NCBI GenBank assembly: GCA_002269645.1
Contig: NIVC01000513.1
Span: 62,001-126,000, forward strand
DNA from: Macrostomum lignano
Lineage: Eukaryota
Direction of reading: 5' to 3'
Length of the DNA stretch: 64,000 nucleotides
Below are positions 33,317 to 41,230 of the stretch, piece by piece; position 1 is the first letter of the stretch, and each line of letters begins with the position of its first letter. Under the pieces are notes generated by a model. It saw nothing but the letters and a program-made list of their open reading frames with translations. It was not told the DNA's origin and made no database searches. Position numbers and translations under genes: made by a program.

Positions 33317-36300
33317 ATGGAGCCGTCCTGCCAGTCCGGGTGCCGCTACGCCCTGCTACTGTTGCTAGTGTTGCAGACTCTGCTTCTAGTGGCGACACCC
33401 GCCGCTGTTCGAGCTGCCCCGGTGCTGACCGAGGATGAACTGGCGGTGCCCGGTGAGGACTGGGAACTGTTTTTGGGATTTTATTGATCTGGAGAAATGG
33501 CTGTGCTGCTCTCCTTATCTCCTCTCCCTCACCTGCTCTCGCTCTCTCTTTCCTTCTCTTCTCTCCCTCTCTCCCCCTCTCTCTCTCTCTCTCTCTCTCT
33601 CTCTCTCTCTCTCTCTCTCTCTCTCTCTCTCTCTCTCTCTCTCTCTCTCTCTCTCTCTCTCTCTCTCTCTCTCTCTCTCTCTCTCTCTCTCTCTCTCTCA
33701 GTATCTCTCTCTCTCTCAGTATCTCTCTCTCTCTCTCTCTCAGTATCTCTCCCTCACTCTCTCTCAGTATCTCTCTCTCTCTCTCTCTCTCTCTCTCTCT
33801 CTCTCTCTCTCTCTCTCTCTCTCTCTCTCTCTCTCTCAGTATCTCTCTCTCTCTCTCAGTATCTCTCTCTCTCTCAGTATCTCTCTCTCTCTCTCTCTCT
33901 CTCAGTATCTCTCTCTCTCTCTCTCAGTATCTCTCCCTCACTCCCTCTCAGTATCTCTCTCTCTCTCTCTCTCTGTCTCTCTCTGTCTCTCTCTCTCTCT
34001 CTCTCTCTCTCTCTCTCTCTCTCTCAGTATCTCTCTCTCTCTCTCAGTATCTCTCTCTCTCTCAGTATCTCTCTCTCTCTCTCTCTCTCTCAGTATCTCT
34101 CTCTCTCTCTCAGTATCTCTCCCTCACTCCCTCTCAGTATCTCTCTCTCTCTCTCTCTCTGTCTCTCTCTGTCTCTCTCTCTCTCTCTCTCTCTCTCTCT
34201 CTCTCTCTCTCTCTCACTCACTCTCTCTCTCTCTCTGAGTATCTCTCCCTCACTCTCTCTCAGTATCTCTCTCTCTCTCAGTATCTCTCTCTCTCTCTCT
34301 CTCTCTCTCTCTCTCTCTCTCTCTCTCTCAGTATCTCTCTCTCTCTCTCTCTCTCTCAGTATCTCTCCCTCACTCTCTCTCAGTATCTCTCTCTCTCTCT
34401 CTCTCTCTCTCTCTCTCTCTCTCTCTCAGTATCTCTCCCTCACTCTCTCTCAGTATCTCTCTCTCTCTCTCTCTCTCTCTCTCTCTCTCTCTCTCTCTCT
34501 CTCTCTCTCTCTCTCTCTCTCTCTCTCTCTCTCTCTCTCTCTCTCTCTCTGAGTATCTCTCCCTCACTCTCTCTCAGTATCTCTCTCTCTCTCAGTATCT
34601 CTCTCTCTCTCTCTCTCTCTCAGTATCTCTCTCTCTCTCTCTCTCTCTCAGTATCTCTCCCTCACTCTCTCTCAGTATCTCTCTCTCTCTCTCTCTCTCT
34701 CTCTCTCTCTCTCTCTCTCAGTATCTCTCTCTCTCTCAGTATCTCTCTCTCTCTCTCTCTCTCAGTATCTCTCTCTCTCTCTCTCACTCACTCTTTCTCT
34801 CTCTCTGAGTATCTCTCCCTCACTCTCTCTCAGTATCTCTCTCTCTCTCAGTATCTCTCTCTCTCTCTCTCTCTCTCTCTCTCTCTCTCTCTCAGTATCT
34901 CTCTCTCTCTCTCTCTCTCAGTATCTCTCCCTCACTCTCTCTCAGTATCTCTCTCTCTCTCTCTGTCTCTCTCTGTCTCTCTCTCTCTCTCTCTCTCTCT
35001 CTCTCTCTCTCTCTCTCTCTCTCTCTCTCTCTCTGTCTCTCTCTCTCTCTCTCTCTCTCTCTCTCTCTCTCTCTCTCTCTCTCTCTCTCTCTCTCTCTCT
35101 CTCTTTCTCTCTCTCTCTCTCTCTCTCTCTCTCTTTCTCTCTCTCTCTCTCTCTCTCTTTCTCTCTCTCTCTCTCTCTCTCAGTATCTCTCCCTCACTCT
35201 CTCTCAGTATCTCTCTCTCTCTCTCTCTCTCTGTCTCTCTCTGTCTCTCTCTCTCTCTCTCTCTCTCTCTCTTTCTCTCTCTCTCTCTCTCTCTCTCAGT
35301 ATCTCTCCCTCACTCTCTCTCAGTATCTCTCTCTCTCTCTCTCTCTCTTTCTCTCTCTCTCTCTCTCTCTCTCTCAGTATCTCTCCCTCACTCTCTCTCA
35401 GTATCTCTCTCTCTCTCTCTCTCTCTCTGTCTCTCTCTGTCTCTCTCTCTCTCTCTCTCTCTCTCTCTCTCTCTCTCTCTCTCCCCCCCTCTCTCCCTCC
35501 GTTCCTCTATTATTGTCTCAATTTCTTTTTCCTCTATTCCTTATCATTCATAGCTAGCAACTCATGCAGCAGTTAAACAGGCTGGATACCTGAAAACCTT
35601 GAGAGAGAAATGAAATACAACTCCTGTCTCCACCTAAACACAATCAATTCAAGTTTTACTCCGACCTACCCTCGAAGCTCACGCAATTACCAAATTGAAA
35701 TAAAAAATTATCCTGAATAAATGTGTTGTACATGTCAAAAAACTTTTTCCATACGATAAGGCGCGGGCTTACAGTTCCAGCGCCCGTGCTGCGGGGGATT
35801 ACAAAGGGGATGAAGGAGTTGGCTCAGGGGCTTAGGCCAGCTAATATGGATTTTTCGTCACCGCCAACTCGGCTAAGCAACTGGGATTATTCAGGGATGC
35901 AGGATCCCATCGGGCCGTCACCCCCGGAGATAATTGCAGGCATAATTAGTAGCTGAGGCTCTGTTCGCTGTTCGGAAGTTTTGCATTAAAAACTCATTTT
36001 TTTGCATTGGATGCTAATGACGCGGGACTCGCTGCGAGGCTGAAGGGAAGGGAGAGCAGGTGAAGCCAAAGTCCCGCCTTCCCAACCAGCTGGGAATCTT
36101 TCAAGGTCAGCTCACCCGGCTGCTCATCTGACAGTCTGATTTTTGGGACGATACACTTTTATAAAATGAGAGTGATTGGCTTGAATCAGGTTTTGAGAGA
36201 TTAATCGGTTTGTATCACTCTCACAGGCTCACTCTCGCAATCTCACTCTCACAGCCTCACTCACAGTCTTAATCTCACGGTCTCACAATCTCACTCTCAC

Positions 36301-39300: not shown

Positions 39301-41230
39301 AAGAATTGTCTCCACCGTCGGGATGGGATACGTGTCTCCGCATATCTGATGGTTAACGCCAACTTTGTAACCAGCGCAGACTCGGACTTTGCCGCTGGGC
39401 TTGAGGACGCAGACGATTGGCGAGGCCCACTGACTCCCGCCCGGTGGGACTGCCTCCAGGATGTCCTCGGCTTCCAGACGTTTGAGCTCCTGGTTGACTC
39501 GTTCCCGCAGATGGAGGGGTACGGGCCTAGCTGCAACGTAGAAGGGCTTGGCGTCGTCTACTAGCCTGATCTTGGCCTGGAAATCGCTGAGGCAACCAGC
39601 CCCCATCAACGGTAGAGATTGTGATGGCGTCCTCCCGCAGCTGCAGGATGTCCACCCGAGGAGTCCGTGTGGCCGTCTGGCCGCCGTGACGATAAGGTCA
39701 GCTGTAAAGTACCTCGCCTGGGACTCCCAGGCTGCGGTGAACATTCCTAAACAGCTGATTCGCGATCCATCGAACTGCCGCAGGACTTTGTCGCACTTCC
39801 GCAAGCGGGGGCAGCCCAGTTCCTTCCACAGGTTGCTGGGAGCAAACTGGCCTCCGCTCCGGTGTCCACTTGCATAGGGAGCGCGCACCCGTTGATCTTG
39901 ATCTTGCGGATGAGAGGCGCGGTGCCGTCTCGGTTTGCTGCTTGTCCCGCGGTGAAGATCCCGGATTCCTCGGGATCGGGGCTTCCCCGAGGATCCTGAG
40001 TCTAGAGGTGGACGGCTCGTTGCCGGCCTTTTGATCTGCAGACCGATGCGAAGTGGTTGCTCTTTTGACAGATGGAGCAGCGTTTTCCATAGGCTGGGCA
40101 GGCATCCCGGGCGTGAGAGCCCCCGCAGTACTTGCAGGGCCCTTGGTTGTTGGGCAGGATCGCGGTTTGCTTCCCGCCATGCCTATCCGGGGTGCTGTGC
40201 TTGGAGCGCTGAGCGCCGGCGAAGGCGACCTCCATGACTGGTGGTGCGTGGCTCGGCTGATTGTAGTCGCGAATCAATTCCAGCAGCTCGATAGCTTGGA
40301 GCATGGCGTTGAGCAAAAGGTCTTCCTGTTGAAGTCTCTCGAGAATTTTCCTTTTGTTGCTCTGAGGAGGCCAGGCCGTCCACCAGCCGCATGGCGATCA
40401 TGTCCTCCTCCTTGGATTGCTTGGAGCCAAGAGTCTCGCAACTGGAGGCGGCAGCCCTGAGTCGGCGGTAGTAAGTCATGACGGCCTCTCCTGCTTCCTG
40501 CTTAGTGAACAGGAATCTGGTCCTCTCGGCGATGATGAGTCGTTTCTTGGGCCTGATTGTGGCAAGGACCAGCGCATTGATTTGCTCGAATTTTAGCGTC
40601 TCCAGTTGATTGGGTGCTGCCATCAGCGAGAGAGTTTTTATGGCGGAGAGGCCTGCCTTTGACAGAGACAAGTCGGTTATTCCACGAATCTCGTCTGTAT
40701 CAGAGAGCTTCTTGATTCTGGCTGTGGCGGCGAAGCTTGTTAGCCAGGCCTCCGCGAGGTCCGCGTTGTCGGGATTGAGTTCAGAGTGTTTCTCTGCTTG
40801 CGACGCCATTGTCATGACGTCTGTCATGATTGTCATGACACAGGTACGATAGCCCCGGCACGTCAAAAAGGACCATAGAAACCATGAAAAGGACCATAGC
40901 AACCATGAAAAGGACCATAGAAACCATGAAAAGGACCATAGAAACCATGAAAAGGACCATAGAAACCATGAAAAGGACCATAGAAACCATGAAAAGGAAA
41001 ATAGCAATCATGAAAATAACCAGTAAATCGTCATAGCAACCATGAAAAAGACCATAACAGCATCAGTGATACCATAGCAACCAGATCAATCGCCATAGCA
41101 ACCATACAATCGCATTGCAGAAGCGATCCGGCAATTCGGCGGCCAGCTGTCAGAGAACGCCATCCCATTCCGACGGCCGCCGCAGCTGCCGCCCCCGGGC
41201 CCGAGCGCGCGCCTCATTGGGCGCCGCTGA
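33317..41230 (+). CDS. Putative neuropeptide precursor (101 aa), exons 33317-33452, 36411-36470, 41121-41230
   Basis: Three exons with GTGAG donors and CAG acceptors, both introns phase 1. Translation: [101 protein letters not shown]-stop. It has a signal peptide, acidic spacer, KR site and terminal G-RR amidation signal, with AATAAA about 115 nt downstream. Confidence 0.75.
33570..35495. repeat. About 1.9-kb interrupted (CT)n microsatellite with CAGTAT and CCCTCA interruptions
   Basis: Read directly; lies in intron 1 of the peptide gene. Confidence 0.95.
36228..36390. repeat. Degenerate (CTCACAGTCTCACT)-type repeat
   Basis: Short imperfect tandem units. Confidence 0.7.
36727..36968 (-). 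repeat. 3' LTR (242 bp) of the gypsy element
   Basis: TGACGTGCC...CCATGACA on the minus strand, adjacent to the PPT and the TSD. Confidence 0.85.
36727..40865 (-). mobile_element. Ty3/gypsy LTR retrotransposon (gag-PR-RT-RH-IN), frameshifted, with a 5-bp target site duplication
   Basis: TSD AAAAG at 36722-36726 and 40866-40870; TG...CA termini. 3' LTR 36727-36968 is preceded on the minus strand by PPT AGAGGGGGGAGA, and a TGGCGTCG PBS overlaps the gag ATG. Domains: gag knuckles CKYCGGSH..C and [14 protein letters not shown], protease [20 protein letters not shown], RNase [13 protein letters not shown] and TDHRPL, integrase VSDNAAEF and [14 protein letters not shown]. Confidence 0.92.

Follow-up and report, generated by a model that had tools for sequence, protein, structure and literature searches.

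The 64,000-nucleotide stretch of Macrostomum lignano DNA analysed here (the window; positions 62,001–126,000 of the forward strand of contig NIVC01000513.1, assembly GCA_002269645.1) contains a three-exon gene, Mlig016995.g3, whose product has the layout of a small prohormone with a single, putatively amidated peptide at its C terminus. Splicing the exons in silico (coordinates in Table 1) gives a 306-nt in-frame open reading frame (ORF) and a 101-aa product. This reproduces exactly the model—three exons, canonical sites, matching phases—that an earlier reading of the same DNA had proposed (hereafter, the original prediction). Both introns are of the GT–AG type and in phase 1, starting with GTGAG and ending with a pyrimidine-rich tract and CAG. 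The coding region is flanked by a TATAAA box and an AATAAA polyadenylation signal, and an in-frame TAA is located further upstream of the 5′ untranslated region (UTR). GC content is 0.57–0.73 in the exons (0.77 at third codon positions, GC3), 0.48 in intron 1 and 0.57 in intron 2. Two details of the original prediction need amending. The exons are not all absent from the ORF track, as exon 1 lies within a 56-aa ATG ORF (33317–33487) shown by the 50-aa ORF list; nor is the peptide encoded wholly by exon 3, since exon 2 supplies its residues SL and the opening base of the Glu codon. Because exon 2 is symmetric (phase 1 to 1), skipping it would leave the frame intact but take out the Lys-Arg (KR) site and the greater part of the spacer; nothing points to an isoform of this kind.

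The layout given by the original prediction is correct in translation. In order, the precursor consists of a signal peptide, an acidic spacer, a KR pair, a 35-residue peptide (SLEAIRQ...PSARLI) and Gly-Arg-Arg (GRR) followed by the stop codon. Judged by a manual hydropathy criterion, the signal peptide opens with an n-region that runs to Arg10; its Leu-rich core spans 16 residues, with hydropathy reaching 3.06 in 9-residue windows, and the c-region reads TPAAVRA↓AP. The spacer is 28 residues long with a net charge of −8 and a predicted monoisotopic mass of 3124.512 Da, and there is no Cys after the signal peptide. The peptide is bracketed by EEKR↓SLEA upstream and ARLI-G-R-R-stop downstream. 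As an Ile-amide, the predicted 35-mer would have a monoisotopic mass of 3808.10 Da, a net charge of about +3 and a pI of ~11.5; proline accounts for 43% of its C-terminal 14 residues and 20% of the whole. An internal dibasic pair, Arg84-Arg85, precedes a proline.

The spliced product is 100% identical, over its full length, to GenBank PAA81761.1, 'hypothetical protein BOX15_Mlig016995g3, partial' (Macrostomum lignano). The deposited model is flagged 'partial' because the ORF caller translated the 63-nt 5′ UTR as 21 extra residues. The GenBank annotation of this assembly relies solely on transcripts from StringTie/TACO, on a de novo transcriptome after mapping and on ORFs from TransDecoder, with experimentally supported transcript ends used where available (Wudarski et al. 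2017, PMC5730564). Since that annotation derives from RNA sequencing, the three-exon structure reflects assembled transcripts rather than ab initio prediction. Expression follows from this, and the gene is not 'hidden', as had been claimed: GenBank lists it as a hypothetical protein, and UniProt has it under the name 'Secreted protein'. The spliced transcript on which the original prediction depended does exist, its coding sequence (CDS) being identical to a transcript-derived model and present in three genomic copies. The gene is real, spliced, expressed and already deposited; its functional label alone is missing.

UniProt gives the older M. lignano models of this locus family two kinds of name, 'Secreted protein' for one and a G-protein-coupled receptor (GPCR) type for another. 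The latter ('G_PROTEIN_RECEP_F1_2 domain-containing protein', A0A1I8IS72) was disregarded: the name was assigned automatically, and the 127-aa entry is a copy of the same precursor. The A0A1I8IS72 model also carries a compensated frameshift in exon 1, where VLTRMNWRCPDG replaces the original 12 residues.

M. lignano is a recent polyploid with a recent genome duplication, and copies g1, g2 and g3 of the gene lie on three contigs of the assembly. All three keep the ATG, both splice-site pairs, the KR, the internal Arg84-Arg85 and the GRR-stop, and all have TATAAA and AATAAA at identical offsets. The introns vary in length: intron 1 measures 2958 nt in the window copy and 2194 and 3359 nt in the others, and intron 2 measures 4650 nt in the window copy against 4615 and 3464 nt, being ~1.2 kb shorter in g2. 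Identity among the copies is 89–97% in blocks across the gene region (mostly intron) and 98–100% in the exons with 30-nt flanks. In the CDS the three copies are 97–99% identical. Relative to the window copy, g1 and g2 differ at six CDS positions, which add up to eight nucleotide differences; five of the eight are nonsynonymous. The four distinct amino-acid differences that result (positions 7, 18, 43 and 44; copies 2–3% diverged) all fall in the signal peptide or spacer and leave the peptide untouched; its coding region has one synonymous change among the three copies. Such a pattern is what would be expected of a prohormone, at a divergence too small for a real selection test.

How often would such motifs meet by accident? 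By a crude count over both strands of the whole 64-kb window, at least 30 open codons ending in G[KR][KR]-stop occur in three places, one of them in this gene. An ATG followed by a leucine-rich, signal-peptide-like stretch occurs five times; one is the start of this gene, three lie inside a minisatellite and one belongs to the DNase II gene. That a signal-peptide start and a G[KR][KR]-stop end share one strand and are connected by canonical introns in phase is beyond chance expectation.

Neither the precursor nor the peptide alone matched any Pfam family at E values up to 10. A word-indexed search of 5.8 billion proteins returned only M. lignano entries, and HMMER, run exhaustively against 1.84 billion representative proteins, added a single fungal protein to the M. 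lignano copies, with no other species found. Planarians, schistosomes, tapeworms and other animals have no detectably related protein in the databases searched; as far as these reach, the precursor appears lineage-restricted. The fungal match (E = 4e-5) is a 488-aa secreted repeat protein of Emericellopsis cladophorae with five units of the form '...EMEQMNNEKR↓QLDAVSGLAGGL...'; like the spacer and cleavage site of the precursor, these units have an acidic stretch of the type E-x-E-x-x-N-x-E-K-R. We rejected it as a homologue: it comes from another kingdom, the match consists of the acidic stretch and EKR context summed over the repeats, it has no Gly-dibasic end and the two proteins have no Pfam family in common. 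We attribute the likeness to convergence in composition at a Kex2/convertase site rather than to common descent. In the literature searched, which did not extend to the peptide lists of McVeigh 2009 and Koziol 2016, substrings of the peptide and the gene identifier appear in no paper, and strings of the -RLIamide type returned only noise such as 'starlight'. Resemblances to GHRH ('...GQLSAR...ARARL-amide'), bradykinin (RPPGFSPFR) and neurotensin (PRRP) were dropped as too weak and without Pfam support.

Lineage-restricted precursors of this layout are common in flatworms: Schmidtea mediterranea has 51 prohormones, many of them without relatives elsewhere (Collins et al. 2010, PMC2953531). Like the Schmidtea spp and npp prohormones, the Macrostomum precursor is small, with a signal peptide, a spacer, dibasic sites and a Gly-dibasic amidation signal; it likewise has no relatives outside flatworms, and it is predicted to share their dependence on processing of the prohormone convertase 2 (PC2) type. 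Its sequence showed no similarity to any of them. Mass-spectrometric or in situ support exists for 40 of the 51 Schmidtea genes, whereas the Macrostomum precursor is known from sequence and a transcript model. A string search of the 51 (PMC2953531 supplement) found that only the Smed-npp-2 peptides end in Leu-Ile-amide. Smed-NPP-2 has six tandem copies of RGLI-GKR behind a Cys-rich spacer, in contrast to one 35-mer ending in ARLI behind an acidic, Cys-free spacer, and BLASTP aligned the two precursors only over the signal peptide and a 5-residue motif of IG plus basic residues (IGRR/IGKR; E ~1). The gene does not qualify as a member of NPP-2.

The other families compared fare no better. With NPY/NPF the peptide has in common its length (~35–39 residues), its single copy, its predicted amidation and a polyproline stretch. 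It differs in ending in SARLI-amide rather than RxRF/Y-amide, in having the polyproline at the C-terminal and not the N-terminal end, and in not directly following the signal peptide. A hallmark of the NPY family is an intron within the Arg codon before the C-terminal residue (Collins et al. 2010, PMC2953531); it is absent here, because exon 3 is unbroken from peptide residue 3 to the stop. PDF/cerebrin and CRH-type precursors have a parallel arrangement, with a signal peptide, an associated peptide, KR and a single amidated peptide at the very C terminus, followed by Gly, basic residues and the stop. CRH-type peptides are ~40 residues long and end in Ile- or Val-amide. No profile match to PDF/cerebrin or CRH/DH44 (Pfam Pigment_DH and CRF) was found at E values up to 10. 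Unlike CRH-type peptides, the 35-mer has a proline-rich C-terminal half incompatible with a helical C terminus; unlike PDF, it is twice as long and has no Gly ahead of its internal Arg-Arg. The flatworm I/L-amides (NPP-1) are usually short peptides with a [G/A]FVR[I/L]amide motif, and pyrokinins and other PRXamides end in FxPR(L/I/V)-amide. Neither motif is present: the C terminus is PSARLI-amide, in which the last five residues (S-A-R-L-I) place Arg at −3 with no Pro before it, and there is no Pfam match to the pyrokinin/PRXamide group. The original prediction was right to set the peptide apart from NPF and pyrokinins. Its statement that the peptide could not be assigned to a known family stands as far as the Pfam, HMMER, NPY/NPF and NPP-2 comparisons reach; the gene itself is not new, as it was already deposited.

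On balance, with slightly better than even credence, we favour a lineage-restricted preprohormone from which an amidated 35-mer Ile-amide would be made and secreted by neurons or neurosecretory cells. We infer all processing steps, the amidation, the expressing cell type and the signalling from the sequence, the word 'neuropeptide' itself being drawn solely from the architecture of the precursor. Signal peptidase would cut after VRA and remove residues 1–33. Within the regulated secretory pathway, cleavage after Lys62-Arg63 by a convertase of the PC2 type would then free the 28-residue acidic spacer; a carboxypeptidase-E-type enzyme would trim Arg100 and Arg101, and peptidylglycine alpha-amidating enzymes would turn Gly99 into the amide of Ile98. 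Once secreted by neurons or neurosecretory cells, the 35-mer would signal through a receptor, most probably a GPCR. A dibasic pair before Pro is generally spared by convertases, and neurotensin keeps its Pro-Arg-Arg-Pro; as the internal Arg-Arg precedes Pro, the 35-mer is the more likely end product. The required machinery is present, since M. lignano has a PC2 homologue whose knock-down by RNA interference (RNAi) severely affects hatchlings (PMC4490696) and whose promoter is active across the whole nervous system (PMC12435804). A more specific proposal is tentative, and we would put it somewhat short of an even chance: that Macrostomum or the Macrostomorpha have a neuropeptide family of their own, perhaps recent in origin, whose 35-residue product, with a polyproline C-terminal half ending in Arg-Leu-Ile-amide, would act via its own orphan GPCR and whose three copies would all have remained intact after the recent duplication.

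Several observations weigh against a neuronal prohormone. No orthologue was found outside M. lignano, in databases that apparently do not hold the transcriptomes of other Macrostomum species; because of this, the selection inference draws on three copies only 2–3% diverged and has low power. Expression or peptidomic data for Mlig016995 were not found in the literature and supplementary tables searched. The older UniProt model A0A1I8HP56 has four Cs where the window has five (~41193–41197) and so loses the GRR-stop; this is probably a homopolymer assembly error, and A0A1I8IS72, from the same older source, retains GRR, yet A0A1I8HP56 could be a real variant copy. Lastly, a proline-rich, mildly cationic peptide also resembles some host-defence peptides. 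That resemblance leads to the alternative we take most seriously, albeit as an unlikely one: a secreted bioactive peptide made by the same convertase and amidation steps in non-neuronal cells, for instance a host-defence peptide rich in proline, or a product of glands or seminal fluid (from epidermal, pharyngeal, adhesive or prostate gland cells). The proline content, charge and pI given above would suit it, as would lineage restriction, which is seen in many secreted effector and reproductive proteins, and the lack of resemblance to any neuropeptide family. Typical proline-rich antimicrobial peptides carry repeated PRP/RP motifs, however, which this peptide appears to lack; an acidic spacer, KR, a single peptide and G-R-R-stop make up the standard neuroendocrine layout; and the gene identifier is absent from the germline, neoblast and reproduction-related M. 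lignano supplementary tables searched, which are possibly incomplete.

Somewhat less probable still is a prohormone that is also cleaved at Arg84-Arg85, with a non-amidated 19-mer (2076.06 Da) and a short 14-residue amide (1437.85 Da) as active products. The dibasic pair is indeed kept in every copy, but the Pro that follows it generally blocks convertases, and no Gly stands ahead of it, so the 19-mer would carry no amidation signal. We regard it as improbable that the locus is a young, taxonomically restricted transcript, a short ORF with chance prohormone-like motifs that yields no processed functional peptide. This would account for the absence of homologues outside the species among 1.84 billion representatives, for copies too alike for a meaningful selection test, and for a short, GC-rich CDS amid microsatellites and a retrotransposon remnant. 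Against it, a signal peptide, an acidic spacer, KR, Gly and a dibasic-stop follow one another in correct order, five independent motifs of which each is rare in the window; the ORF is intact in all three copies, with amino-acid differences that avoid the peptide; and the promoter and poly(A) signals are conserved. The same low probability attaches to a highly diverged member of a described family, be it one of the M. lignano npp genes of McVeigh 2009, a flatworm family of Koziol 2016 or a -LIamide relative of NPP-2. McVeigh 2009 reportedly mined M. lignano expressed sequence tags. Neuropeptide precursors diverge past the reach of sequence search, and the -GLIamide ends of the Smed-npp-2 peptides recall the -RLIamide here; the near-empty BLASTP alignment, the contrast between six tandem tetrapeptides behind a Cys-rich spacer and one 35-mer without Cys after the signal peptide, and the absence of the peptide strings from the papers searched all speak the other way.

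The prohormone interpretation appears to be new in the literature searched, for a gene that was itself already deposited. If the peptide is real, it would be another taxon-restricted signalling molecule in a tractable flatworm (transgenesis, RNAi, a PC2 reporter line), and a convenient case for following the origin of neuropeptide genes and receptors and their fate after a recent whole-genome duplication. In practice, three entries now named 'hypothetical protein' would gain a functional label, and peptidomics would have defined masses to look for. No long-standing question is opened, as flatworms already have dozens of lineage-specific prohormones and motif-based discovery is routine.

Table 1. 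Features of the Mlig016995.g3 gene and of its surroundings, in window coordinates
Feature	Position	Strand	Description
TATAAA box	33213..33218	+	104 nt 5′ of ATG; ~36–41 nt 5′ of deposited-model start
5′ UTR (reach of deposited model)	33254..33316	+	63 nt, no ATG, no stop; model start maps to 33254
Exon 1, coding	33317..33452	+	136 nt; ATG at 33317; phase 1 end; donor GTGAGG; signal peptide (residues 1–33, 33317–33415, predicted cut VRA↓AP) and start of acidic spacer
Intron 1	33453..36410	+	2958 nt, GT–AG; mostly (CT)n microsatellite and 14-nt minisatellite
Exon 2	36411..36470	+	60 nt, phase 1 to 1; acceptor tttcag, donor gtgagt; remaining acidic spacer, Lys-Arg convertase site (36458–36463), peptide residues SL and first base of Glu codon
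Intron 2	36471..41120	+	4650 nt, GT–AG; antisense LTR-retrotransposon remnant between 21-nt minisatellite arrays
Exon 3, coding	41121..41230	+	110 nt; acceptor attgcag; peptide residues 3–35 (to 41218), Gly-Arg-Arg (41219–41227), TGA (41228–41230)
AATAAA polyadenylation signal	41346..41351	+	115 nt 3′ of stop codon
RNase H and integrase zinc-binding domain	37407–38720	−	Pfam; intron 2
RVT_1	38317–39888	−	Pfam; intron 2
Gag-like CCHC ORF	40002–40316	−	Part of intron 2 LTR-retrotransposon
Dynein heavy chain large exons	12877–22407	+	DHC_N2, AAA_6 to AAA_9, MT stalk, Dynein_heavy; E down to 1e-151
Mab-21_C-like protein	27196–29051	−	Weak match
397-aa ORF	30855–32048	−	Sub-threshold apolipoprotein-like match only
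DNase II homologue	44785–46092	+	E 5e-45; signal-peptide-like ATG start at 44839

The introns and the 3′ flank of the gene are rich in repeats. Intron 1 holds a (CT)n microsatellite (33536–35499; ~980 units, 82% purity) and an array of a 14-nt TCACTCTCACAGTC minisatellite (36215–36389), and a (TGTC)90 array lies just downstream of the gene (41535–41894). Long spurious ORFs in several frames result from these three arrays. Intron 2 harbours a degraded long terminal repeat (LTR) retrotransposon (37250–40320, minus strand), antisense to the peptide gene and split over shifted frames, in which minus-strand ORFs at 37407–39888 match Pfam RVT_1, RT_RNaseH and Integrase_H2C2. An identical 21-nt minisatellite flanks it on both sides (~36480–36740 and ~40780–41110), as if the element had inserted into a 21-nt minisatellite array.

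Elsewhere in the window, two minus-strand ORFs have no Pfam match (514–3024, 836 aa; 53768–55393, 541 aa), and the remaining neighbours are listed in Table 1. The dynein heavy chain exons are near-continuous as ORFs of 810, 1151 and 699 aa.

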